A stretch of 64,000 nt of DNA from Iphione sp. A-MEVVRFRX5. Taxonomy: Eukaryota. The notes under the pieces are model-generated. The model saw nothing but the letters and a program-made list of their open reading frames with translations. It had not been told where the DNA came from and ran no database searches. Numbering within the stretch: the stretch's first letter is position 1; every line of letters starts with the position of its first letter. Positions 3,001-54,666 of this stretch are shown here, in pieces. The stretch covers positions 62,124,001 to 62,188,000 of the forward strand of contig OZ320313.1 in the NCBI GenBank assembly GCA_976226885.1, given 5' to 3'. A program made the position numbers and the translations under genes.

Positions 3001-5491
3001 GTGACCGCCTGCTATTGTGCTTTCCTAGCGGCCTTACTCTTTTCTGGGGACACGTTAGGAGTTTCGAGGTCCGTAATATACATGTACGCCATTGCCTCTA
3101 AGATAGAGCTACCTTTCAACCAGCGCACAATCCGGTGTGTCGTAGAGGACAGAAGGTTAAATGTCTTGGACTGCCAATGCCACTGTCAGGCAGTAGATGC
3201 CTCCAGGCTCTTCCTTTCGGAGCTGACCGTCTACATCGAGCTGCCCATAGTCAGTATCAAGTTCAAAGTAACAGAATACCTAACAATGCTTTGTGTTCCC
3301 AAGCAATAAATGTATGCCTGTCTCCAAATTAGAAGCCCCCCCCCCGGGTTTATAGCGTCCAGGACATTGCATTGTACTCGATCAAGACGATCGCGGCTTC
3401 AGCCTAAGCATATTTTACATTTCCTTTTTCAATCCTGATTAAAACATTGCATTGACAATTTTCTTGGACCTTGGACGACCCTTGGCCAAGAAAGATGGAT
3501 AATACATAGACGGTTGTATAGAAATTACAGGTATACAATTAACGTGTTTTGTATTTTTCTAGAGGTTTTATTCTTTCCTTGGCACACGTTACGAGTTCGG
3601 GGTCCATCATTTGCCTCTTTTCAACCGGCGCACAATCCTGTATGTTGTAGAGGACAGAAGATTACATTTATAAACATATTTTACACCAATCGGGACGCTG
3701 GGTTATATCTTAACCCGCCAACCAATTTAAAAATTGTGGAATGTCCTATGATTAGACCAACGGTTTTTTCTACCCGAGTGCAGATCACCCCCTCACACAT
3801 GATTTGTCTAAAATAAGCGACGATCAACAAATTGAGTACTACAACCATAGTGAAATCTCCAGCGATAACAAACATTAAGAAAAGTCGACATATTCCTACA
3901 TCATTATGTATTTTAAATACTTTCAAATGAGTATTTTAATGCTGTCGTTAATGAGCGTGTACATATCATGGTCGTTCCGGTGCATACATTTAGGCTCAAA
4001 TGAGCATTGCCTGTAAATTTCACACACCACATTACAGAGTCTTGCATTAAATCCAGTATGGTATGGCAAATGTCCTAGGACCAGGTTCTGAGTAATATAA
4101 CATGTAGAAAAGCAGCAGGGATCCATACACAGAAACACACCTTACGGAGATTTGCAGTAAAAGCTCATTCTCCCCAGACACTCTCTGCACACAGTCATGC
4201 ATAAAAATCGAATTCATGGAAACACAGCCGACTACTGATGCTTACTTCATACAGCCTGCCAACTTTTTTTGCACAAATGTAAAATTCACGTAGGCTGAGT
4301 CACAAATTGCGTCAATAACTGATGATATATACTGTTAAAGAAAGGGTATGTTTTCCTTTGTTGTTTGAATAGTCTGCTGACTGCATTGACAAAAAATGGC
4401 GAATAGTCTAGCCACGTGATTCTTACTTAAATTTTGGCCCAACCAGCAAAAAAGCCCGCAGCTCGGGGCAAAGTCACGAGATTTTCCATCAAACAAGGAA
4501 AGCGAACAGATTGCCTGAAGAGGGCTCTAAAAGGGAAGAGGGAAGCACCCCGGGTTATGCTGACCTTGTGAATGCAAATGGTGGCTCTCTACCGCAACCT
4601 GGTTTGCTTACCACATTTTCAAAAGTTTTCGCTCTACGTCCAATTAAAAGTTCTGACAGTTAGTTTAGAAATATTATTACATATACATATACAAAATGAT
4701 ACATATGTATGTGTATGTAGGGCATCTCAGGGGTTAGTTTGGTACAGAAATAGCGCCTATACTGAAGTCCTCTTTGTGTAAGTTTGTGTATGTTACATGA
4801 GCAATGTATCTAGCATACCTGATCACTTATGTTATCGCATGAACCATATAGCACAACTCAACCGTGTCAAAGGGAAATTTGTCCTCTAGCGTCAAAATTC
4901 AATGATTTACATGGATATACATGTATACCTATTTACATACAGGAGTTCTTTGGTTCTCAATTGCTATACCTTTAGATATAGACTTAGAACTACGCCAACA
5001 GCAAGTTTGAAATCCACCACCTAGGATTTCTTCATCATCTTGTTGATTCCTGTTTCGTTGTAATAATTAGAATATAATTAACTACACTATTGCGGTCATT
5101 AGAGGCGGAAGCCTACACGGTGACTGAATGCAGCTGAATGTTGGCACAGTAAATTCATTAGTTCTCACATAATACAAACACTGATCAACAAGCAACTTGT
5201 AGCTACATAGGTGTAAACGCCTTTACTTGGATGTATATATGTACATGTATATATTATTTACGCGTTCCGAGATTCCAGACGGCAGGGAATAGATTGTCGA
5301 CTTAATCGGTGAACAAATGCTGTAGCCTATACATTGCCTATTACCTATATTAAAAAGAAATAATGGTACAGACATTAGATGATGGAACACAAAATGGGCC
5401 AGGGTCTTGATATAGTTTGTCGGGCAACTATTGACTGGAACTATTGGTCATCTTAAGAAAGTCAGAATCTACCAGGAATCTAGAGACCTAA

Positions 5492-6123
5492 GCCCCGGTT
5501 TCCATACATGCGGCGACCTGCGTTGGTATGCGTGTGCGTTTCAGTGCGGGAAACGCATTGTCGGGGTGTTACTGCATGGCGACGCACAGGGGTGTCCTTG
5601 TTCATGTGTGCGTTTGTGTGTGTGAACTAAGCAAAAAAATACAAAAAACAGCCAAAAAACGCCGAAAAACAGCAAATTACATGGAAACTGGGCCGAAAAA
5701 CGCTTATTTCATGCAAATTCAGCAAAAAAATGGCAAATTACATGGAAAATCGGCCGATAAATGGCTTATTTCATGCAAATTAGGCTGAAAAATGGCAAAA
5801 TTGTGCGGAAAAATTTGGGGAAAACACAACATTGTGCGGAAATGTGCAGTATCCACATCCAAAAAGTGAGTAAAAGTGAGTAAAAACAAGTAAAAGTGGG
5901 GAAATACAGGTGCGTTGGTGTGTGTTGGTGTGCGTTGCTGTGCATTTGCGGCAAATTTACGGGAAAGGATGGAAAATGGGCCCCGCAGGTCACCGCAGGT
6001 TACCGCACACGCAGGTCACCGCATGTATGGAAACCATCTCACTGTTTGCCTATAGATCAATAATGACATAATTCACCACAGGTCACCGCACACGCATACC
6101 ACCACACGTAAGGAAACCGGGCC
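5492..6123. mobile_element. PIF/Harbinger-like MITE, GGCCCGGTTTCC family
   Basis: TAA|GCCCCGGTTTCC...GGAAACCGGGCC|TAA; internal A-rich repeats related to the 58093 copy. Confidence 0.8.
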
Positions 6124-9100
6124 TAAAGGCCACTCTGGTCCATTCAAAACAGCAAGGTAGAAGCAAAACCTTCAGCTGACCAAAACTCACGTCCCACACC
6201 AACAAAACTGTTTATACTGTAACAGTATGAGATGCTATTAAAAGATTATTCACATATTGCGACTGGCTGAGGACAAGTCATCAGAGGCAGGAAGGCGGGG
6301 AGGGGGGGGCCGTGGGGTTGTAATGTCATATTGGTCTAATTGATCTAACATTGTCCGACTCTCACTTGTCTTTTTAATTGTTACAACTTTTGATTATCTA
6401 GTAAGTGATTTCCAGCTGGGAAAACGTACAAGTGTACAGCCAGGCGATATACATGAGTAAACGAGTAGAGTAGGTATGGACAAGTGCAAGTTGGATAATG
6501 TCTTAGGCTCCCAGTGATGGGTCAATTCAAAACATTTGCGATATTGACGTTTGTGTGCGTAAGGACTGATAATTGGGATAATGTATAATCTGTGAGGCTA
6601 TCCTCGCCTTAGCCTGGCAATGTTCGAGGCATTCTTTGTCCTTTCAGGTTAAACTGGGGACATGTTTCCACTAGAAATGTGTGATTCTTCTCTCCAAAAT
6701 AAAACACAAGGGGTGTATTCAGAGTACGTTCAAGGTTAGGATAGAGGCGGAAAATTCAGTTTAGTGTCACCTGTAAGAGTGCGTTTGGATTACTGGATTA
6801 CCTGTAAAAGATGCGGAGGGGGGGGCGATATATAGGTCGAATTGGAAATGTATCATGTGACAGGACGGTGTCCTATTTCTAGGGGATTACAAGCAAGATA
6901 GGGAGACACCCTGTTGCCATATTGTAATTAGAAGGGACGAATATTAAGTCCGGATTCGCATCCTAGATAACACATTGGGTTATCCATACAAACCAAATGC
7001 CGACATATTACGACTCGCAGTTCCTTTATGGAGAGCCATTCGCTAGAGTAAACTGGTGAGAGTATAAATCGCAACAAAGTAAGAATATTTGGCTGAATAC
7101 CAGTTAGTCTGCGGAGTTAATCGTCTTAATGCGGTAGTAATGTAAATGTAAGAGCATCATTATAACTTAATTAAATCTAATATCTAATATCAGAAAAAAT
7201 AACTAGCAATGTCTACAGTATTTTCCCAGTTGGCTAGTTGGAGTATTTCCTGCATACTAGACAAAGGACATCTCTGGTTCGAGTTGGGGAGAAGGTATCG
7301 GTTAGTACGAAACAGAAAAAGGTCATAAGAATAAGCCTCCAGTGATGGGGTCTGGCCTCAATCTGTGGTGTCTTACCTCCAGTGATGATCGCGCCATATC
7401 ATGGGATGATCTGCTTATGCAAACAGCCCTCACCTCTTGTGTATTGTAGCCTTATTTATCCGGGATTGGAGTTCTAATTCTTGCCCTTTCGAAGAAAACC
7501 ACCAAAGTCAGTGCCTGTGAATGAACACTGAGCGTAGACCTTCAAGGTCATATTTTTAGTGGATTTGATATTAAGTGCTGTATTGAAAGTTGTCTATAAT
7601 ACCAAAAGAAAAAAAAGAAAAATTAAAGCATTTAAATTACTCTAAAAGGAAATTTGATTTCAACAATCTTGAGTTGTACTCCTTCACAAAACATTCTTCT
7701 CTGGCCCAGTTTTATTTATCAGGAGGATGTCTCCTCTCATTGACTGCCTTGGTTAAAGATTCTTTTAGTTCATTTAAGCCATAAATTATAATAGAGTAAG
7801 TGAAACTCTTATAGATAGAAATACCAATAGGATTTGTGATTTCACACATCTAGAATTAAAATAGTCTTCTTTTGTTCCTCCCCAGATAGAATCATCCACT
7901 TTTTTATCATTCAGTTGATTTTCTTAAAGGTCAACACTGCACATTTTGGTCAGTTATAAAAATGTTTTTGATCTAAATTTTAATTGTACACATCTTTTAG
8001 ATCTCCTAATTATAACTTAACACACGTTCTACCCACAAGGTGATCATTATATATGCATATAGTCCACATTATCAGTCTGCAAAAAATATAGCTTATAATA
8101 TATAAACGTATATGTATGTATTGCACGTTTCCCTTAGAAATAGCAGCATAAAAGAAAGTCGTCGCCTGCTTTCGACTACAGTCGCAAATAGATTGAACTA
8201 CATCTGTATTGGTACTTCTCGTATTACCAGTGAATTGTAGAATACAGTATATTCTCACATCACCATGACCAGTTCTATATACTTGACACAACATATCTTA
8301 TACGCTGAGTAGCAATTGGCTAAGAACATGTTATACATCTATTTGTACATCTATTTGATTAGTTACAGTGTAGCATTAATATTCCATACTCTATTTTAAT
8401 TGGTTGAAAACATTCCGGTCCCATGAACAATCATTCCATATACAGATGGTTCTCCGAAACCGAACACTCAAAAAAGAAATACCTGTGACCAATACGGGAG
8501 TCTATACTTGGACCTGGGGTTGGGCAGTTGGCTTCATTGAACTAAAAGTTGGAAATACAGAATTACTGGGTATTATTTGCACTCTATTAGGGACTGTGTT
8601 TACTGACAAATTAAGTGGCTGTGTTTAAATTGACCTATGGCAACATATAGATCACTTAGTTAAACATAAGAAAACCATGCGCCTGTTCAGTGTATCATGG
8701 AACACATTTTGAATACGCTCAATACACAAGCCTGTCAAACCATCTTCCCTGACGTTTCTACCTTGTGTTTGGCATAAGAAAGACTTTTTGTCACGCAACG
8801 TACACATTATGACAAAGACGAACACGTACAGACACAAAGAGAGAACCTTTGCTCTTAAAGCAACTGCATTCAGCTGTTGTCTCTACTGTAGACAAATGAG
8901 TATTACTGGTCGATATATCATTTAGAAAAAGACTTGAATAAAAGAATACAAGTAAAAGGCCGGTATATACATGGAACCTTGGATATTCCGAGGATGCATA
9001 CTGTCAGCTAGTAACTGAATTTCCTGTATGAATTCTAATGTTTCTCTACCTAAGACTTAATGTGATTGATCTTGTGAAGCTATAACCACACTGGCGCCTT

Positions 9101-11113: not shown

Positions 11114-14100
11114 GTGTGTAAATTTACACTTTCGTAGAGAATAGATCTTATTAGAACAGCTCAGTAAGTTTCTTACAGTTTTTGTTCTAGCACTGTCTTC
11201 CAGTAGCCTTAACAGATGATCGGTCCCATATAAGTATTTGTGTACAATGTATTTGCACAGATGCCGAATAAAGCAGTCAATGTGTACATTAAATATGTAT
11301 AGGATACAAAAATAATATGATAATATATAATATGTATATAATACATATATTGTAGATTATCGTGAAGTCAAAATTGTCGAAGCAACAAGATCTTATGAAG
11401 TATCAATTTATTCGGATATTTATTCGGATCCAAATTTTGGAGAATAGCCTGGATCTATGTTTTCATATCTTTTCATCTGCAGGCGTTCCGGATCAAGAAA
11501 CGGTCAAATTAATGAGCACTCCTCGCTGTGGATTCCCTGACATACTGGACAATAGCACTTTATCAGGGCGGCGAAAAAAGAGATTTCTTCCTTTAGGTAG
11601 TATTGTCTGTATTCCTACATGTGCCCCAATACTAAAGGATACTGTTCCGCGGAATATAGCTCCACAGCTCTGGAAGTCTTTGATTCTTGAATGATCAGTT
11701 ACCCAAATTGGAGAGCTTTGTGTTAAAAGTTGAAGTTTAGCATAACATTTGAACATACTGATTGCAGTATAATAGGAAATCTATTATGTTATTTATTATC
11801 ATCAAGCTTATTAATTATTGTATACATGTATTTTCCTAATATATACAGTATCACCTCGCTAATACGACCACCATTTGTTCTGACTTTAAATGGTCTTTAT
11901 AGGGAGTGGTCTTATTAGAGAAGGGTATCTATATACAGATGAACCTCGCCAGCCTGAGTCACAACAACCGGAATTCTTCCCTAACCGTAATGATTTTAAA
12001 TAACCAAGTGTTTCTCTGTATAAAATGTACTATTTAACCAGATTTTCATTTTCCATGGCTGGATTCCACTTGACCACATTCTTACATGCCTTACTATAGG
12101 AAATACACACAGTCAACTGGACTAGAGAGAACAAAGGAAGCGTCAGAGACATGTAAAATGATTATACAACAGTGATATGTGGGCCAGCTCTCATAAACAT
12201 ACATCTCACCCATACAAAAAAACCAATATCCACAGGCCCTCCGGTTAACAAGGTTCCTCTGTACCCCTAGGACTTTCTGTTCCTTTCAATGGTCTTAAGA
12301 GGGAGGTGATCTGATTAGAGAGGTGGTCGTAGTCCAAGGGGATACTGCATTGTCTTTTTGGTTACCATGGCAACAGCATGGGATAAGACATTATGATAGA
12401 GTACCAGGATTCACTTTCCAGTGCTACCTATTTTGATTCCTAGAAAGAAACAGTAATAGTTCCAAACTTCCCCCCAAAAAGCACATGCACTTACACATAC
12501 GTCATGTGACTCCCTTAGTGATTGCCCATAATGTAATTTAGTCAATTTTCATCTAGCCATCTGCTTTACACTTCTTGGGACTTGTATTGTCTATTTCCCT
12601 GAAAAGAAGAGATTATTACTTAAGGCTCTTCAGAAAACCCATAGGCTTATCTGCCAATAGTGGTGGTTAAGCCTAGATTCTTCCTTGGTTGTCACATGCA
12701 ATATGTGTGAAAAACTGATGGGGCAACAATACTTAGTTTGCTTAATTACTGTAATAATCAAAGTATATACTGTAATAATCTATGTATATTTTTTCAAGGT
12801 CGTTGGACTAGGACAGATTTGACGTATAGCGTGGGAAGCTCAACTAAAATGCCTTTACATCAGGTCGAAGCAATAATTGCTAAAGCTTTGGAGGTATTTA
12901 TGAATAATTCTATTGTAGCGTGGAATTTTGCATGTTGAACAGTGATTTCAGCTGCTTCCGTGTAAATGATATTTTTTATGATGATTAAATGCACAGCCCT
13001 TTGTGTACGGAGAGTAATAATATATGTTGAGAAACTCAAATGAAGCAAAGCTTTAAGATATCCTTGAATCAGTCTCAAAACATAAAGCATTTCCAAAGCA
13101 TTGAGGAGCCAGGCATATACATGAATTGAATAGTCCATATCTGTAAAGGTCTTTGCCGTGATGCAGCCATTCATATTTTGAAAATGGATATTGCAACATA
13201 TAAATAATGCCTTTCTAGCTTAACCCCGTCCAGGCGGCCACTGTAAAAATGCACTCCCAGGGCGATGATGGCGAATGCACTAACACATTCCCATGTGAAC
13301 GATGGGCAATGCATTTTTGCAACAGGACCCCAAGAGCATTAATTTAATGATATCAAATGGAGATAATAGATGGATTTTTATGAGATTTGAACAAAATATA
13401 GACAAATAACCATACGCCATTCTAGTTTATTCCGAAATTATGAATTCTGAAGTGAATATGACATTTTCCATTAAAACTGTCATATTTCCCTGTGTTTACA
13501 TAGGAAACTGCTGACATATGAAGTAAATTACCTACCTGATATTAAAATCATCTGTCCATACAAAAATGACGCAATAGTAAAGTGCCGCCCTCTGTAGGAA
13601 AGTGCCAAAATTAACTCCACTGCATGAGTCCATGACTTATCGTCAGGTCCCGCTGTTAAAGGGTTAATTAAGTAGGTGTGTTCCATAACTTTACTGTGTT
13701 GTCAACAATGTGATAGCAGATGCATAACTTATTACAAAAATGAGGATGGGCTTAGAGCTGGGCACCCAAAGAAAAGTTGTCGCAAATTTGAACCTCTCTG
13801 TAGCAAATATACAATCAGTTCAGCACTAAACTAGTCAACAATGAAAGAGGATTGTCGCATTCATTAATATCTTTGTCGCATGTTTTTTTGCGAAATGCAA
13901 CAGGTTGCCCAGCCCTGTAAAGTCGTAACTACTCATTTAAGATGATAAGGCATTAATAACTATCAATTCTGCATATGTTACATTCTCTCTATTCAAACAG
14001 ATTTTCTGCTATATTTTCTAACGTCATTATGAAGGCTCTACACTCTCAGAGGGTTCATTCAGAGAACTGTACCTATACATTTACAGAGAACACATTGAAA

Positions 14101-17100
14101 ATGAAAAATATTTGACCTATCTATAGTTTTGACCATCACAAGGAATTGCAATGAGAGTTAATTATATTTAACCGCCATAGCACAGTTATCATGCGTATTA
14201 CTAGTCTGAGCAAGGAGTGATCTAAGGGGAGGATCTAGCCCTCACCTCAAACATTTTGGATCTGCCACTGCTCTGTGTGGAGCTCGCATTTTAAACTACC
14301 TCTTTATTCCTCTATGTTCAAGTTCAATTTCATGTTCCAGTATCTGTTTATTGTGATAAACCTCATTACCAGAGGTCACCCATGACAGCACTTAGGTGCT
14401 ACCCCCATGTATGTCAGATATCTGGACGCAGACCTTTAAAGATATTAACATATTGTTAGGCGGAGAAGTTACTCTGCACAGAGTTTGGTTCCGGTTTTCA
14501 GAGTATGTTCTCAGCTCATGTTGGTCTGTCTCAGTTCATATCAGTCTCCAGAGTTTCTTGAGGTTATGTTCCTATTACCGAAGCTTTGTGAAGAACTTGG
14601 CAGCATTGTTAGCCCTGCTGAACACATTGTTGCAGAAAGAGGCAGAGTTCCACTGGAATGGAAAGTGCAAAGAGGCATTCAATAGCTTAAAGACATGGTT
14701 GATGATGGTGCCTATGTTGAGTTACCCCTGGCCAGAAGGGCAACTACACTTGGACACGGATGCAATAGCAGGCATAATTGCTGCCATATTGTCCCAAGAC
14801 TAGGACGGCAAGGAGGGAGTTCTTGCTTATGCCAGCCAGACTGTCACCAAAGTGGAACACAACTACTGCATGTCTAGGAAAGAGCTGTTGGCTGTCGTAT
14901 TTGGACTGAGGAAGTTCTGCCCATATCTGGGAGCTCAGCATGTTATTATCTGGACTAATCACAATTCCCTTAAGTGGCTCTGCCACTTTAAGGAACTGGA
15001 GACCCAGCTGGCATGGTGGCTTGAAGAGATATATGCCTACAACCTCACCATCAACCATCAACTAAACAGCGTTCACAGGATCTTGGATGCAGTGTATGCA
15101 ATGAGGCTGAAGGGAAGAGAGCCAAGCTGAAGCACAGAATAACTCTGTGTGGGTGTAACAAGGCAGAAAAAGACTCTTGCAGACAGTGCAGTGGGAAGAA
15201 AGGATGGTGGGTGCTTTGCTGGAGGCCCTGGAGTTAGAGGAAGGACTAGCCAATGTCCTTTCCCCTAGAGACTGTGAAGAGTGCTGGCTCTACAGTGAGA
15301 GAGAACAACTAGCCTTGAAAGAGGGAGTGTTGTGCCACATGGGAATGGGAAGACAGAAGCATTCTGATGCAGGCGTACATCCCCAAGACCCTGTAGCATG
15401 AAACATAGAAGCAGGTGCATGCAGGCCCTCTTGGAGGTCATTTGGGGACCAAGAGGATGCAGGGAGCAATCTATCTCAAATATTTTTGGCTGCAGCTGAG
15501 TAAGAATGTGGAGGTGTTGAGAAAGTGCTGCGTGATGTGCCAGAAGACTAAGGACCCCCCCCCCCAGCTAAACATCAGAGGCCACTCGTGTTGAATTCAG
15601 TGGCAGGACCTTAGGTGTTTGTAGCAGTGGATGTATGTGGACCATTTTCTAAGACACCAGGAGGCAATCGGTTCATTATTGTAGTAGCAGACCATTTCAC
15701 CAAGTGAGTTGAAGCCTTGGAAACCCTAGACATCATGGCCGAGACCAGAACTTTAAGGCTGCAGTCTTAAAGAACTTCTGCATTCCATTGGAGTGGACAA
15801 GTTGCGGACCACCCCATATCTCCCACAGATTGACAGGGTGGTTGAAAGGTTTAACCAGACACTGGGAAAGATGTTTGCAGCCTTAGTGAATTTAACTTGG
15901 ATGAACAATTCCCTTTCATGACAGCTGCATACCAGGTCACTTCTCATCCAGGAATTGGTTTTACCCCAATTGGCTGATACTGCAATGGGAGACTACCTTG
16001 CCATCAGAGTTGGCAGAGATTTTTGAAGTGCCCCCAGACCAGAGCCCTTTGCAGAGTGAATTTCTATCTGTGGTATCAGAGAAAAGGAAGTGGAGGCCCA
16101 CTGGTTGGCCTGGGAACGGTTGCAGTGCAACACAATTAGGCAGAAGGATTACTACAACAAGCACGTGTGCGAGCAGACCTATCAACCAGGAGCACAGGTG
16201 TGGTTACTTTCCTTATTAAAGAAGAATGGGTGTTCCCCCGAGTTGGAAAAGGTTTGGCAAGGCCCATGTACCATACACAACCAACTAGATGTATCAGAAG
16301 TAATCTCCCAGATCAAGAATGGGACCAGACGGCATGTGGTACACACAGATTTCCTGAAGCCAGCAGTAGACCCCCTGCATGATAACGTCATAGAGGTGCC
16401 ATGTGTCCTACGTGGGATGAGTGGGGACAAGGCAAAAGGAGCTGAGCAGAAGAGAGCGACAACATGCTGTGTGTCAAGGGAGGGGCGACAACCAGTCCAA
16501 CAGGAGAGCAGGAGGGGCAGAGGGACCCTGGCTCTACCCCTGACAACCTCTGATTCCGGGTAGTAATGTTAAGCCCAGATCTCAAGAAGGACCTCTACCA
16601 GCACCTCGCTAGTACAGACACTGGGGCGAGACAATGGCCAGCCTGGTATGGCCCCTGCCCAGACAGTGGAAGCCCCATAACCCAATGGAAGGGGCATGGG
16701 CAAAGCTTCTAGCCCCATTATTGAAGAAAGCATTCCTTGCAGGAGTTTTAGCTAGATAGGAAGGAGGAAGAGGAGGAGACTACTGGTTTGGGCATTTCAT
16801 GTAGAAGGTCCAGGATGTCCACTGGAAAATGAAGAAGTGACTAGGAGAGATGACCATGGCTGATGTCTTTGCTGAACTCAGACAGCTAAATCAGGAGCTG
16901 TTTCAGTGACTGCGGAGCAGAAGTTGGCATTCCCTGCCTGTTGTGCAGAGACTCAATGTGGAGTATTAGGTTTTCTATCTTCTTTATCCACTATCATTTC
17001 AATAAGGTGTATCTGTTATAATGACATGATAAGATATTGTGAAATGTATATTAACTGTTCCAAAGTAGGCATAAAAATGTTAATCGATACAGTGTAAGGA

Positions 17101-41656: not shown

Positions 41657-42316
41657 AGTACTATCCCCATAGACGCGAACCTTCCGCACCCGCCACTCTG
41701 TGCGTGAAGAGCGGGGAGACCGCTTGAAGCAGTTAAGATATAATTATACCCATGTACGCGGACAACCCGGACACGGCACCTGCTGCGTGCGGGATGATCG
41801 GGTGTGGTCCGGGAATCACGCATACCCCGCCACCTTGCGCGTGATGGGAATAGGTGTGTGTGTGTGTGTGTGTGTGCGTGTGTGTGTGTGCATGTGTGTG
41901 TGTGCATGTGTGTGTGTGTGCATATCTCCCTGGATTCCTGTCAAATTTGTGTAAGTAATGTGTTTTTTGTGCAAATCTCACTGAATTCCTGTCAAATTTG
42001 TGTAGAAAATGTGTTTTTTATGCAGATCTCACTGAATTCCTGTCAAATTTGTGTAAATAATGTGTTTTTTTTGTGCAGATCTCACTGAATTCCTGTCAAA
42101 TTTGTGTAAATGATGTGTTTTTTGTGCATATCACATTGAATTCCTATCTTTTGTACTATATTTTGTTGTATTTCTTTTGTATTCTCAGCCTACCTGAGGT
42201 GGCGAATAGTTCGCGCATATGGGGATAAACCCCGCCACCTGTTGCGTACAGGTCCGGGCTGCACGCACCACGCCACAATTTGCGTGCGGGCAATTCGCGT
42301 CTATGGGGATAGTGCT
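41657..42316. mobile_element. Harbinger-like MITE just upstream of the LRR-Ig gene
   Basis: TTA|AGTACTATCCCCATAGACGCGAA...TTCGCGTCTATGGGGATAGTGCT|TTA (23-bp TIR, 1 mismatch); internal (TG)n and about four 51-52-bp tandem units. Confidence 0.88.
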
Positions 42317-42632
42317 TTACACAATAGACTACAGACAAATCTGGAGGCGCAAACCAGACCTGTCCCCCCAGACGTTCGCCGTACCTCACTCGAATAACCT
42401 TCGCTACACGGGTCTTTTCCGCCTGCCCGCCCACAGTGCATCGCCTGCCAGAGGAACTAGGTCACAGAGACGCGCCGAAAACAAGCGACGAGGGAAGGGC
42501 CAGTCGTGGAAAGGTGAGGAGGGTGCATGGACAAACAGTGAGCGTGTGCACCGTTTTGGAAGAGAAGAGAAACCAAGTCGGCCAGACTGGGGACGAGTTG
42601 AGGTGAGGGTTATCCAAGGCCGGACTCGGGAA

Positions 42633-43785
42633 ATGGCGGTGTGGCAGGCCTGTAGCCGGTTAGTAGTCGTTGGTGTTGTGGCGGTGTGCTTCACCGTGGC
42701 GGCGGTCGAAGCTTTCGATGGGTGTAGGATACGGTATGGCCCGCGCGGCTGCCACGACAATGTCTATGAAGGTGTGCTTGTTACCTGTGATGGCGACGGC
42801 AACTACGGAGCCATACCGCCGGTCATACCTAGCGATACAGTCTACATCTCGCTCAACAACTTTCAGTTCGACACACTCGCGCGCGCCAACTTCTCCAAGT
42901 TCAAGATGGTGCAGTGCATGAGCATCATGAACTCCGGCATTAATGAGATCGACTTCGATACCTTCACCGACATGGAGTCACTGCTCGAATTAGAGCTGCA
43001 TAACACTGACTTGGACGGCTACGATCTGAACTTTATCAACCACCCTGAATTCAAACCCGTCCGGGTCGCGATTACAGGATCCCCGCGCATCACTGCCTTG
43101 AATTTCCATGGTACACCCCTGATGGAGAAGATCACTGGATTCAGCCTTAAGGGCAATAGTATAACATTTATTCAGCCAAGCCTGATCTCAGCCCTCCAGA
43201 ATCTAGTCACTCTCGATCTCAGTGATAACAGGCTGGACACACTCGAATGGGACAAGCTGAGTGAGATGAGCAAGCTCAATGGACTCTACCTAAGCGGGAA
43301 CAACTTCCAGAACATCCCGCAGCGTGTTTTCCGCACCTTCTTTGCTGTGAGGGAGCTTAAGATTGCCGGCAATCCTTTCCACTGTAATTGCAACCTGCGC
43401 TGGCTGCGGGACTTCTACGCTGACACTAGTGACCGTATCATCGACCTTGACCAAGTGCACTGTGTTTCACCCTTCAAAAAGCGCATGATTGACGTACCTG
43501 AAAGCCAGTTTCTATGCACTCAACCCTCGCTACCCGTCATCGAGCGCTACCCCCTCGACTCGGAGGGTAAGGAGTATGCATACAATTGTTCGTCGATGGC
43601 GGATCCAGCGCCCAGTCTCACCCTGCACTTCACGGGCGACCAGACGCTCATCACGCCACCTAGCGAAGACCTGTCCAAGCTTAAAACAGCAACACCACGG
43701 ATTATAGGGTCAGCAGGAGGTGTCAAATGCATTGCCACCAACTCCGAGGGCTTCAGGGAGAAAGTAGAGTTTGTACCTCTCACAG
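42633..43785 (+). CDS. Leucine-rich repeat and Ig-like domain cell-surface protein (LIG-type), first coding exon; downstream exon(s) unresolved
   Basis: Signal peptide MAVWQACSRLVVVGVVAVCFTVAAVEA, Cys N-cap, LRRs (LVTLDLSDNRL, LNGLYLSGNNF), LRRCT NPFHCNCNLRWL...C...C, Ig-like C...ADPAP...CIATNSEG; strong donor ACAG|gtaggt at 43785/6. Confidence 0.9.
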
Positions 43786-44247
43786 GTAGGTTAACCCAGA
43801 CAGTGTCTTACTTCCTTGTGGACTTACGTCCAGTTTTCATGTGTACAGGGTTTTTTTTCTGGAAGCCATGATTGTCCAGAAAATGGGCAAATTTTCTGGA
43901 TGACCACAGACATCCAGTTTGCATCTCTACAGGCAGGAGAGAGGGTGTGTGTGTGTTGATCGGAAGGAATTCTTACCAACTCTGTGTAAATGGTTAGTTT
44001 TTTTTGTGCTGATTTGAAGAAATCCACCTCAGATCTGTGGAAATGGCAAGTGTTTTAACCCTTTCCTGACCGACAATGTTAAATCGTTCACTGGTGAACG
44101 ATGACCTTCAAGTTCAATTTACGTGTAGAGAGATTGTGATTTTGGATAAAACTGTTACATAATAAGGAAGATAAACTTGCAATAAAGGCATATAGACCCT
44201 AGAAATTTGCAAATATCTATATTTATACATTTAAATTGACTTTCGGC

Positions 44248-44271
44248 TGACGTCACTATGATGTTACGTCA
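44248..44271 (+). promoter_or_regulatory. CRE/ATF-type bZIP sites immediately upstream of the transposase ATG
   Basis: TGACGTCA at 44248-55 and TTACGTCA at 44264-71; ATG at 44280. Confidence 0.4.
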
Positions 44272-44279
44272 CTGACAAT

Positions 44280-47261
44280 ATGTCGCGGCCTAAGAGGATC
44301 GCAGCAGAGCGAGCGAAGGAGCTATTTCAAGCTAATCTTCAAGAAGAGGAAAGTGATGATTGTGAATTTTACGATGTTTCATCATCAGAAGATGAAGATG
44401 ATGAATCAATGGTTGTTGATGAAGAGTATTATGATTTAGAAGAGGAGGAAGAAGAAAATGCAGGTCTTATGGATGTGAGCGTAGCAGACGATCAACAAAG
44501 CCCGACGTGAGTTTGTGTTTATCAAGAAATAATTTCAAATCTTACAAATATTTACATGGAATCAATACATATGATACTATGAGTTTGGATTGTTATTGAA
44601 ACATGATAATAAAGTTTTATTCGCACTGTTTGAATAAAACAGAAACAGAAATGTAAAGCGCTCGGATTATGATTGACGTTAGGTTATGACGTAAACAGTT
44701 ACGTCATTGTTGTAAACAAAAGCACGTGTGCGCTGTAGTTGAAGTTATTGTCATTACGTGGCAATGGTACGATTATTACAGAAATAATGGCATAAGGTTG
44801 CCCTTTTGCTAATAATTCAACATGTCTATTAAAATTTAAAAAGAAAACACTAACGAATACAGGATATGTATAAATATTACGGTTTGTATATCCTTACATT
44901 CATAGATCGTCACCCGTAGGGTCGTATGACACTCCAGATATACAAGTTGAGTCTTCTGAATTCCAACCTGATGCTTCCCCTGGACCTCAATTGCCTCTCG
45001 GAGACAATAGATATGGACAACATCTCTTCAATCGGGCAATTGATTTCTTCCATCTCTTCTTTTCCGTGGAGGTGATTAAAGTAAGTTTTTACCTTGTGTT
45101 ACTGTCTATCATGTTCAATGCAATATAGACCTCATTTTGATAAGGATGTGCTTGTGTGATACTACTCCTTTGGGATATCTCTATGGAATGGTTCATGGCA
45201 TGAGATTTATTTCTAACAGGTGAAGATCACGATATATTATTTTTTGTAATATTTTTATTTTTATCTTTACAGATGATTACGGATTCAACCAATGCTTATG
45301 GTAATCTCCACATTCTCCAAAAGCAGACGTATGGCGTACATGCTGATGGCTGTTGGAAAGACGTCCAAATTGAGGAGATGCAGAATTTCTTAGCACTGAT
45401 AATTTTCATGGGCTTCATCCACAGAGCAGACATAAGCCGTTATTGGTCCCAGGCCACACTGTATGCAGGAGGATGGGCAAGGCGATTTATGTCTAGGAAC
45501 CGGTGAGTGTTGGATATGTCATATGACTAGGCAAATTATAGGATAATTATGATGTTTCAGCTGTAATACTGTGGCCTTATATTTCTTTCCATCCATGTTT
45601 GATGAATCGGGGCCCCCCCCTCTATCAATTAATCTATTTTATCATGGATAACTCTTTTTTTCAGCTTCAAAGCAGTTCTAGGCATGTTGCACGTTACAAA
45701 CCCTGAAAACGAGGATGTCAATGACAAACTGACCAAGGTTCGACCCCTGATAACGATAATAAAGAAGGCATGCCAGTCTACCTACGTTCCTTTCCAAAAC
45801 CTCTCTGTGGACGAACGTATGGTGCGTTCCAAAGCTAGATCCGGAATTCGGCAATACATCCCCAAGAAACCTGTTCGCTTTGGCATAAAATTGTGGTGCC
45901 TATGTGATGCAAAGACAGGATTCACCTCGGATTTCAAGTAAGAAAATAGACAATGCTGTGTCACGTATATGTATGAATCTATGGATCAATGCAATAAAAT
46001 GTACTGGCTATTTCCATTGACATTGCACAATATTAATACCTTTCTTCCAAAATGTTGATTTATTACAGTGTGTACACTGGACGAAGGGAAAAACCTAGTG
46101 GACGAGGCATTGGATTCGATGTTGTCACATCCTTGGTCGACCGTTTCAGAGATAAGGGTTACACTGTGTATTTCGACAATTACTTCACTTCATTGCCTCT
46201 CCTTCAACACCTGAAAGCAGCTGGAATATTTGCTTGTGGAACGACCATTCCTACCCGTCGTGGATTTCCCAAGGTGAGATAACTGATGAATGTACTGATA
46301 ACAGGTTGTCATAGTGAAGTATATTATTTTTACATTATGTGGATGAATTGTGCCTACATATATGTCGTGTTCTTTCAATGCAGAAACTGAGAGACAAGGC
46401 CTGGCTGCGTAAACCTAAACGTGGACAGATGAGGTATACAAGAGTAAATGGTACTTTATGCCTGCAATGGTATGACAACAGATCGGTTTGCATTTGTTCT
46501 ACCAAACACAATGCAAACGACTTTGTGATGGTTGACAGAAGAACCAAGAACAAGGCTGGAAAATTTGAATGTATCCAAGTGAAGAAACCAGTATCTGTCC
46601 ACGAATACAATAAGTATATGGGCGGAGTCGATATTTCTGACCAGAGGCTCGAGAGGTACTGCATACTGCTCAAATCCATGAGGTGGTGGAAGACAATATT
46701 TTATCACCTCCTGGACATGTCCGTCCTTAACGCTTACATCTTGTTCGACCTCTGGAGAAAGGCTCATCCTGAAAATCCGCTACTGCACAGACCAGCTGGT
46801 AAGACATTACTTTAGTACTCTGATATACCCAATAATTGAAAGAAAGAAGGCACTGTAATGTTTCCTTTCAGGTAACTACATGGCTTTGTATGACATTCCA
46901 CAAACATTTTTGTCGGCACTGTTCTGATTGACTCATTCTTTTTTTCCTGGTAACAGGGTATTCACATCTGTCATTCAGAGAAGAGTTGGTGAGGCAGCTG
47001 GCTTGCATTGCTGATACTGAAGACATCCCTAGTCAAGGTGTCCTGGTCAGGCAGCCCAATCATAACACACGACATGCTTCACATATGCCTGAAGTCTCAG
47101 AGAAAAGAAAGAATTGTCGTGTATGCTACACACTTCACAAGAAACAAAACAAGACCTCTTGGATGTGTCCAGAACCGGGTTGTCAAGTCAGCTTGTGCCT
47201 AAACGTAAACAGAAATTGCTTCAAGCTTTGGCACTCCAGTGCATTTGATGAGTACGTGTGA
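44280..47261 (+). CDS. piggyBac transposase, 609 aa, 7 exons: 44280-44506, 44906-45080, 45273-45502, 45665-45937, 46069-46273, 46384-46798, 46957-47261
   Basis: All junctions are GT-AG and phase-compatible (2,0,2,2,0,1), 1830 nt with no internal stop. Acidic N-terminus, DFFHLFF..E.I..ITDSTNAY, catalytic triad in SVDE, YFDNYFTS and MGGVDISDQ, QYIPKKPVRFGIK, C-terminal Cys-rich domain CRVC...CPEPGC...LC...CF..WH. Confidence 0.95.
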
Positions 47262-47462
47262 ATGTAAGTATTGACATACTATATACAGATGGACACAAAA
47301 TCTAAATCATACAGGAATGTTTCATGATTTATTCATGAAATTCTACAAATACTCAAAGAATACTGTAGTCCACAAACTAGATAATCTCTCAGTACTTCTA
47401 GGAATAGTACCCATTCTGCCATATTACAGTTTATTGTCACTGCAGCTGCTACACTACTTTTT

Positions 47463-48588
47463 TTAGGGATACGGCATTATTGTTAGCTCTTTCAGGGAAA
47501 CATGGTACACTCCTGGAGCATGTTGGTATTGCTCGTCGTAGGCGCCCTGGTTGTCACTTGGAAATTGCTCTCTCACAGCTGCGCGGAGCTCACTGGGGAA
47601 CACGAATGTGTGACAATCTTCTCCAAGTCCAGCTCCAAACTGCAAGAAAATTGACACTATTTTGTTGTAATTGTAAAAAAAGAGCATGTCTAAATCTTAT
47701 ATGGTGCATTTCCAATAATAGCAATTCCATACTCTGGATGTAGAGAATTACCTTGGTTGTGTTATATTGCCCCAGTATTAGCATAACAGTTTCCATCCAG
47801 TAGGACAACAGATGTAAGATAATGTAAAACAATGAAGGGCAAACAATAGCATGTATTCCATTATGGTTTTGTATAAGGAATGGAGGATTGTAAGAAAACT
47901 GGAAAACAGCACCAAAGAGTGATTGTCTATATGACAATATACTCACTTTGGCAGAGGCCCGCAGCTTCTTATATACATACTTTCGGCTGGGGCTCTCCTT
48001 TATGAGTTGCAGAAGAGGAACAGGCACATGAAGACTGGGTAAGGAAAATTGGACATGTAAATATGTTTATGTGACGATGTTACAAGAAATTTACAGTAAG
48101 CAAGGGCATTCAGTCAAGAGCAACTTCTTTTCAGTATATCATACAGCGACATGGTAAACATCAATGCACAAAGCAATCTGTGCTATAAGGATAGAAGCAT
48201 TACAATGGCAAGCATTCCAGAAGACAAAACCTGACCTATCCAAGTTTCCTTTTTACACATGAATTTAAAAAAAAAAACAACACAAAACCTGCACATTTTA
48301 CATCGTATTACCAAAGTGTCTTACTTCAACGTACTTGTCCAGATGGTCTAGCTATATTGTACATATTTCTAATACATATGTGATTTAAATGCTACAGCGT
48401 GAGTGCTACCCTCTTGGTATCATGCACCAAAGTACGTGAACGTTTTGTACGGTAAGCACATGGTGTTCGACATATGTCTGTTTTATAAGCATTAGAAATA
48501 ATAACATCTGCAATCATTTCCATTAATAAAGACTCTGGTATTATTACACTTACCCTGCCTTGTAGAAAGCCTTTATTAATTCATCCAT
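47463..48588 (-). CDS. Second (passenger) gene inside piggyBac, convergent with the transposase; exons 48588-48554, 48034-47947, 47639-47463; 99 aa, KolX / P2X7-ballast-like motif (tentative)
   Basis: Donors CAGG|gtaagt and CAAA|gtgagt; acceptors ttttccttacccag| and aattttcttgcag|. The 300-nt frame is open: MDELIKAFYKAGLHVPVPLLQLIKESPSRKYVYKKLRASAKFGAGLGEDCHTFVFPSELRAAVREQFPSDNQGAYDEQYQHAPGVYHVSLKELTIMPYP*. Minus-strand AATAAA at 47430-35 and 47328-33. Confidence 0.68.
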
Positions 48589-49337
48589 CTTCTATTCTGC
48601 CGCAAGAATGAGAAAACCAGGTTCGACTTGCACTGCGCACCCAACGGTTTTGAACGACTGACACGTCACGTCACGGCATAAACATGTATTTCAGTGAAAT
48701 CCACCATTTTTTTTAAATTTTCACATTTATTTCAAGCCATCAAATCATAACTTATATGTGATACTGCCGTTATATAAAAAAAAATCGATTTAATTACATT
48801 TTTCTCAACTCAAACATAATAACCGTTATGCACTCCTGCCCTCTGGCTTTTCATATACGCACCAACATTCGCCTTTCATTTTTTAACACCAGAGTGCTCA
48901 CATTCGAGATGTTGCAGTCCAGCTCATAATCATCAGGTATCTTTAAACGAACTATCAATTGATAGCAAATGTCTCAGGGAACATTCCATCAATAATGACT
49001 GAAATTGTCAGATGTGAACTAAATAGGCTTTTGGCTCATTCTATCAATTTTTGCTGTTTTTTGCGTCTTTTCCAGACAACTCTCTTCTTTGTTCATCTCC
49101 ACCTCCCTTATATTTAACCCTTTCATGCATTCTAATTTGAGTATGATAACCATGAAGTAAACAATCTAATTTCATTTAAACCATTTCTTATTAAAATCGG
49201 ATCATTTTTAACGAAATTATTAAATAAAATGTAACCTTATGTCCCGGTTCCCAAATGACAACAGCCGAAAACGCGGTCAGGAAAGGGTTAATGCACATGA
49301 TATGCAAACAAAATATTTTACATTACCTAACATGTTA

Positions 49338-54392: not shown

Positions 54393-54666
54393 NNNNNNNN
54401 NNNNNNNNNNNNNNNNNNNNNNNNNNNNNNNNNNNNNNNNNNNNNNNNNNNNNNNNNNNNNNNNNNNNNNNNNNNNNNNNNNNNNNNNNNNNNNNNNNNN
54501 NNNNNNNNNNNNNNNNNNNNNNNNNNNNNNNNNNNNNNNNNNNNNNNNNNNNNNNNNNNNNNNNNNNNNNNNNNNNNNNNNNNNNNNNNNNNNNNNNNNN
54601 NNNNNNNNNNNNNNNNNNNNNNNNNNNNNNNNNNNNNNNNNNNNNNNNNNNNNNNNNNNNNNNNNN
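54393..54666. other. Assembly gap (274 N)
   Basis: Run of n. Confidence 1.

Follow-up and report, generated by a model that had tools for sequence, protein, structure and literature searches.

The piggyBac element that we analysed in a 64-kb stretch of Iphione sp. DNA (the whole stretch is here called the window) contains a genuine second gene beside its transposase gene. The 99-aa frame, on the strand opposite to the transposase, belongs to a family of short proteins that recur with distantly related piggyBac transposases, carry the signature of purifying selection and are predicted to fold with confidence. What is this family? We put at roughly 60% the likelihood that it is a distant, cysteine-poor derivative of the guanine-nucleotide-binding C-terminal half of KolX and of the P2X7 ballast, a remote homology that is probable but unproven.

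The element and its two genes

The element at 44055-49291 is a complete piggyBac of 5.2 kb with TTAA ends and perfect 14-bp terminal inverted repeats (TIRs). It has the marks of the superfamily, which are a TTAA target-site duplication with short TIRs starting CCC and an intact ORF that combines DDE_Tnp_1_7 with a C-terminal cysteine-rich zf-Tnp_2. Its features are these:

44055-44058: left TTAA target-site duplication (TTAACCC at 44055)
44059-44072, plus strand: left TIR, CCCTTTCCTGACCG, perfect 14-bp complement of 49274-49287
44280-47261, plus strand: transposase gene, 7 exons (44280-44506, 44906-45080, 45273-45502, 45665-45937, 46069-46273, 46384-46798 and 46957-47261)
47328-47333 and 47430-47435, minus strand: AATAAA signals of the second gene, 3' of its stop
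47424-47462, minus strand: letters after the stop of the second gene, in the same frame (KK-stop-CSSCSDNKL-stop)
47463-47639, minus strand: exon 3 of the second gene, 58 codons and TAA
47947-48034, minus strand: exon 2 of the second gene (LHVPVPLLQLIKESPSRKYVYKKLRASAK), with the R..VYK.L motif
48554-48588, minus strand: exon 1 of the second gene (MDELIKAFYKAG); a TAG in the same frame stands two codons 5' of the ATG
48663-48673: ACGTCACGTCA, a CRE-like motif observed about 75 nt upstream of the ATG of the second gene, a motif observation only
49274-49287, minus strand: right TIR, the inverted-repeat match
49288-49291: right TTAA target-site duplication

The transposase gene was delineated by Pfam matches, splice-site enumeration and the spliced ORF. 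Four exon pieces match DDE_Tnp_1_7, zf-Tnp_2 is found in the last exon, all of the enumerated introns are GT-AG, and the spliced ORF of 1830 nt encodes 609 aa without an internal stop. With boundaries taken approximately, the contrast in G+C between its exons and introns is about that of the second gene, in which exons 2 and 3 have 49-50% G+C and both introns 34-35%.

An earlier note on this DNA had described three minus-strand segments that join into an open 99-aa frame, preceded by an in-frame stop, followed by two AATAAA signals and lying tail-to-tail with the transposase about 200 bp away, and each of these readings was borne out. Joined, 48588-48554, 48034-47947 and 47639-47463 give 300 nt, that is 99 codons and a TAA. 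Both introns are GT-AG, with the splice donors AGG/GTAAGT and AAA/GTGAGT and the acceptors TTACCCAG and TTTTCTTGCAG, which are pyrimidine-rich and end in CAG. The core of exon 3 reads FG.G.G..TFVFPSELR..VR..FP....G.YDEQY....GVYHVS. The transposase stop ends at 47261 and the stop of the second gene is at 47465-47463, so that 201 bp separate the two tails.

The second protein would be expressed from a promoter of its own at the right end of the element and translated after the removal of the two introns. Two copies of ACGTCA, resembling CRE half-sites, stand a short way 5' of the transposase ATG, at 44248 and 44266 (44248-44271), and these motifs together with ACGTCACGTCA may be a promoter element common to both genes. 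After the transposase stop there is no plus-strand AATAAA or ATTAAA in 47262-48525 before 48525, a position within intron 1 of the second gene, and the convergent transcripts may therefore overlap. Such an overlap could, speculatively, add antisense regulation.

Neither the element nor the 99-aa protein has a further copy elsewhere in the 64-kb window, and ARAGORN found no tRNA-like gene in the element. Within its right end, an additional TIR copy that points inward and has a TTAA to itself (TTAACCCTTTCATG at 49114) and the right TIR (CAGGAAAGGGTTAA, 49278-49291) outline a MITE-like mini-element of 178 bp (49114-49291). Outside the element, a single-exon ORF of 550 aa with leucine-rich repeats (42219-43871; Pfam LRR_8, E 2.5e-18) stops some 185 bp short of the insertion site, and an ORF at 14396-14803 whose RNase H-like domain is of the reverse-transcriptase type (RT_RNaseH_2, E 2e-8) is a retroelement fragment. 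Additional TTAACCC...GGGTTAA pairs at 13220/13661 and 21445/22692 may delimit further small piggyBac-type elements. At 54393-54666 there are 274 consecutive N, a gap or masked sequence.

A protein family that accompanies piggyBac

Does the second gene have relatives? An exhaustive phmmer search of 1.84 billion cluster representatives with the 58 aa of exon 3 gave nine matches (E 2e-8 to 6e-4), each a short protein (69-146 aa) that has no Pfam domain. Three proteins more came from a profile search, and a scan of JGI metagenome contigs with a sub-alignment of the family as query added 25 further loci. The open frames of the homologous loci define a family of about 100-110 aa with the consensus D.GL.HIL.HYG..R.EVYKRLF.vLWFGN.vG.(5-8)PTYVFP.ELR..VR.RFP....G..DEQY....GvY.VT..E...AKWP.PPKSC..C.

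The spliced 99-aa product aligns with this family from end to end at 29-43% identity. Homology runs unbroken across the junction of exons 2 and 3, where the window has VYKKLRASAK/FGAGLG and intron-less relatives have VYRSLYVHLKANGVGSG; in these intron-less homologues the R..VYK.L motif of exon 2 directly abuts the motif of exon 3. The N-terminus is as long as that of the intron-less loci L004 and L005. At P0008, on a 7.3-Mb contig, an initial intron-like tract ends exactly at the position where intron 2 of the window ends.

The earlier note had proposed dN/dS among copies of the element; among 12 members of the family with DNA, pN was below pS in all 66 pairs. Values of pN ranged from 0.04 to 0.53; pS was 0.63-0.95, near saturation, in all pairs except the close pair L019/L021, and dN/dS was 0.11-0.41 where dS could be estimated. 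The AlphaFold2 model of the 99-aa protein, made on an 18-row family alignment, has a mean pLDDT of 91.1 and a pTM of 0.81. Its predicted fold consists of three N-terminal helices followed by a strand-helix-helix-strand-helix unit, and an unnamed 103-aa cluster representative in AlphaFold-DB matches it over the full length (TM 0.58, probability 1.0). For the relative P0002, an alignment of 15 rows gave a model of low confidence (pLDDT 65), for which Foldseek found no match.

Homologues are also linked to piggyBac. A PF13843 transposase adjoins the homologue at five places by gene calls and tBLASTn, and the gene is enclosed by TTAA/TIR pairs in five elements, namely that of the window and those of L001, L004, L020 and L029. 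The arrangements are these:

L001: transposase and homologue divergent, 577 bp between starts; the TTAA/TIR element 5140-8993 holds both transposase and accessory gene
L003: divergent
L007: convergent, like the window
P0008 place: convergent
L010: tandem
L004: TTAA/TIR element 5907-8351 with the accessory gene only and no recognisable transposase
L020 and L029: TTAA/TIR elements that are internal-deletion derivatives, with a truncated transposase fused to a truncated accessory gene

In all, a transposase is within reach in 17 of the 34 unique loci, and most of the others are contigs of 1-2 kb. The 2.4-kb element of L004 has a second copy, 94-97% identical, at L005 (7629-10060). The linked transposases are only 24-30% identical (about 26%) to that of the window and to one another, and the association thus spans deep piggyBac lineages. 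Gene order is not conserved: relative to the transposase, the gene may be divergent, convergent or tandem. The tail-to-tail order described in the earlier note occurs in the window, L007 and the P0008 place and is no trait of the family as a whole. Across loci the identities of accessory proteins and transposases are uncorrelated (Spearman -0.03), in a comparison made uninformative by decayed copies, fragments and saturation, and it gives no proof that the two are inherited together.

Some of these loci have been rearranged further. Between the accessory gene and the transposase of L007 a 247-bp MITE is nested (3101-3347), with 49-bp TIRs (TTAACCCTTTGACGCCC...). A common internal deletion in L023, L025, L029 and L031 joins transposase residue ~271 to accessory residue ~46; it removes both 5' halves of the divergent gene pair and represents a propagated deletion derivative.

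Could the frame nevertheless have arisen by chance, with sites that only look like splice sites, or be a fragment of a host gene captured once by this copy? The protein is short and belongs to no Pfam family: neither exon 2 nor exon 3 matched Pfam, a word-index search with the 74-aa ORF of the window was empty, an exact look-up of that ORF in public assemblies found no record, and feature searches of the ESM Atlas, with exon 3 and the L007 homologue as queries, returned nothing beyond bacterial 'hypothetical' clusters below the threshold. Against this, the significant homologues, the purifying selection in every pair and the confident predicted fold rule out a chance ORF. The earlier note had named unlinked host genes, captured by this one copy, as the outcome that would speak against its reading; the homologues are instead repeatedly linked to piggyBac, and their linkage to distantly related transposases, within TIRs in five elements, rules out a one-off capture. 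Either origin is barely conceivable, and the 99-aa frame is a real gene, the second of this piggyBac.

Whether the gene is still in full working order in this copy is a separate question. The window protein ends ...LTIMPYP, about 12-20 residues short of the C-terminal KWP..PKSC..C motif of the family, and it has neither the W of the WFGN motif nor the second H of the H...H motif. The KWP.PPKSC..C tail is present in 14 of the 18 aligned members. Judged against the family alignment, the letters KK-stop-CSSCSDNKL-stop that follow the stop may be a remnant of the PKSCxxC tail, and they look like a tail severed by two nonsense codons. With the C-terminal CxxC tail missing, this copy may encode a truncated, possibly weakened version of the protein.

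The gene might even be a decaying, non-functional remnant in this copy, its tail lost by nonsense mutations and its open frame a reflection of the youth of the insertion. The early stop, the CxxC-like letters beyond it where CxxC is expected, and the lost W and H all point that way. However, the same copy has a 1830-nt transposase ORF without a defect and perfect TIRs, and two nonsense changes within 4 codons of a 300-nt gene are therefore unexpected under neutral decay. The truncated protein is still predicted to fold (pLDDT 91), and P0004, P0008 and P0011 likewise have no KWP..PKSC..C tail. We therefore consider decay possible though unlikely. A lineage-specific shorter form is as possible as a severed tail, since the transposase of the same copy is flawless.

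A probable relation to KolX and the P2X7 ballast

KolX, encoded by Kolobok elements of the Kol0 lineage, resembles residues 476-595 of human P2X7 (Kojima & Bao 2022, Mob DNA 13:24, PMC9587614). Across metazoan ballast domains R546, Y550, P570, R578 and F/Y581-P582 are conserved, and the GDP ligands in rat P2X7 are R546, R574 and R578 (Rump et al. 2020, PMC7016195). The earlier note had likened the core of the second protein to a motif of KolX and of the ballast. The signal for this likeness is weak: hhalign aligned the family with a KolX set over 39 columns (score 28.7, P 1.4e-4, probability 52%), in the register predicted by eye and with a 5-residue insertion, the set being thin, at 6 rows. 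Matches to the Pfam domain or to a solved structure were not found.

The KolX set was composed of three PF20478 database proteins and three C-terminal blocks typed from the machine-read Fig. S6 of PMC9587614. When columns were shuffled, 300 times in the KolX set and 250 times in the family, not one shuffle reached the real score; the shuffles scored 11 on average (sd 2.3), with maxima of 23.8 and 21.4, and the real score lies 7-8 sd higher. Against a single KolX block (P 0.076) or the three PF20478 proteins (P 0.015) hhalign was not significant, and significance was reached only with the better family alignment and the 6-row KolX set.

In the hhalign register R546 corresponds to R29, Y550 to Y33, P570 to P56, rat R574 to R60, R578 to R64 and F/Y581-P582 to F67-P68. 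The 99-aa protein thus has equivalents of R546, Y550, P570, R574, R578 and F581-P582 of the ballast of rat P2X7 (6U9V), with its GDP/GTP and dinuclear zinc sites. Shared with KolX/P2RX7_C in the same register are R..[AV]Y[KR]..., W.[FY]G..[LFV]GK, [IV].P and ...[IV]R..[FY]P. From the C-terminal motif R..AY...W..G.LG...[IV].P.C...[IV]R..[FY]P...G.Y.GF, C572 and the terminal G.Y.GF are not retained as such.

There are also clear differences. The earlier note had remarked that the zinc-ligand cysteines are largely absent, and this is so: the seven conserved zinc-coordinating cysteines (ZCD motif) are missing, the 99-aa protein having a single cysteine, and unlike KolX (Fig. S6 of PMC9587614) the family has no WC.CG.C...E..CC half. 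H547 and K583 of the ballast are absent from the window protein as well, and the protein stands alone at 99 aa whereas the ballast is the tail of a channel. Compared with KolX, the family has a 5-residue insertion before the P and about 35 extra C-terminal residues, and its host transposon belongs to a different superfamily.

The differences raise the alternative that this is a real, conserved piggyBac-borne family unrelated to KolX and the ballast, with a fold of its own, in which R..Y..W.G..G and P.....R..FP arose by convergence or chance. Pfam P2RX7_C (PF20478) was matched at E up to 10 neither by exons 2 and 3, nor by the nine homologues, nor by the full 99 aa and 17 relatives, that is by none of 18 members; as a control, a KolX fragment does retrieve PF20478 proteins. 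The family profile did not find P2X7 among PDB sequences, where its sole match was a chance one to BT3088 (E 0.1). The pLDDT-91 model has no significant match to P2X7 or any other solved structure, or to Swiss-Prot models, by Foldseek (PDB, Swiss-Prot) and a wide VIA-align search, tools that are weak for a 50-residue sub-domain of a 595-residue chain. The C-terminal extension of the family (GvY.VT..E...KWP.PPKSC..C), absent from KolX, the insertion and an hhalign probability of only 52% also fit an independent origin. But chance would have to account for a score that exceeds the 550 column shuffles by 7-8 sd and for an alignment that falls exactly into the predicted register, and the matched columns are those conserved across metazoan ballast domains. 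Moreover, both occur as accessory genes in DNA transposons with TTAA targets, and KolX-C-like proteins in piggyBac have an independent published precedent (PMC9587614). An unrelated family would therefore be rather unlikely, and descent from the C-terminal half of KolX/P2X7 remains our preferred reading of the sequence comparisons.

Precedent, possible function and meaning

The arrangement, which the earlier note had thought might be undescribed, is not so: second genes were noted in two non-animal piggyBac families (PMC9587614). Since that work describes KolX-like piggyBac proteins, the concept of a piggyBac second gene is already published. The published precedent amounts to one sentence and two sequences, the KolX-like second proteins piggyBac-2_GrCh_2p of a red alga and piggyBac-14_PI_2p of Phytophthora (Data S6 of PMC9587614). 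As in these, the second ORF of the window lies within a piggyBac element, resembles the KolX C-terminus and lacks most of the cysteines. The published proteins differ in being non-animal and 113-175 aa long, whereas the window gene is split by two introns and its family has its own N-terminal GL.HIL.HYG motif and C-terminal KWP.PPKSC..C tail. An hhalign comparison of the family with the C-terminal 84 aa of piggyBac-2_GrCh_2p was not significant (P 0.46), with 17 aligned columns in the right register. The idea as such is therefore not new, and the contribution of the present analysis lies in how broad the family is, in the evidence of selection and in the structural model.

PIF/Harbinger elements are two-gene DNA transposons that encode a transposase and a Myb-like protein. 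The window element is like them in that a small second protein is encoded within the TIRs beside the transposase. The likeness extends to non-autonomous derivatives that keep only parts, L004 keeping only the accessory gene. It differs from them in that a DNA-binding domain is not recognisable in its second protein.

What might the protein do? It could be a small accessory or regulatory factor for the element, with a basic pocket that possibly binds a nucleotide. It would bind the transposase or the transposition complex as a non-catalytic partner, and a guanine nucleotide might be bound through the surface formed by R29, Y33, R60 and R64. Taken further, many animal piggyBac lineages would be two-component transposons. 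Their accessory protein would have retained the part of the ballast/KolX domain that binds guanine nucleotide, though not the zinc module, and would link transposition to the nucleotide or GTP state of the cell or control the transposase in some other way. We regard this wider proposal as doubtful.

In textbooks and in genome engineering piggyBac is treated as a one-protein transposon. A second protein that is under selection, is predicted to fold well and recurs in piggyBacs whose transposases are about 26% identical suggests that many natural piggyBacs depend on, or profit from, a partner protein. Such a partner could bear on host range, on regulation and on the behaviour of piggyBac vectors. 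If the link to KolX is true, the family would be part of a wider one from which the P2X7 ballast domain was recruited, with the nucleotide-binding half isolated as an independent module, and it would offer a small, tractable protein for testing what the ballast/KolX domain does. If the two-component reading were true as well, Kolobok, piggyBac and the tail of vertebrate P2X7 would share one ancient mobile-element module.
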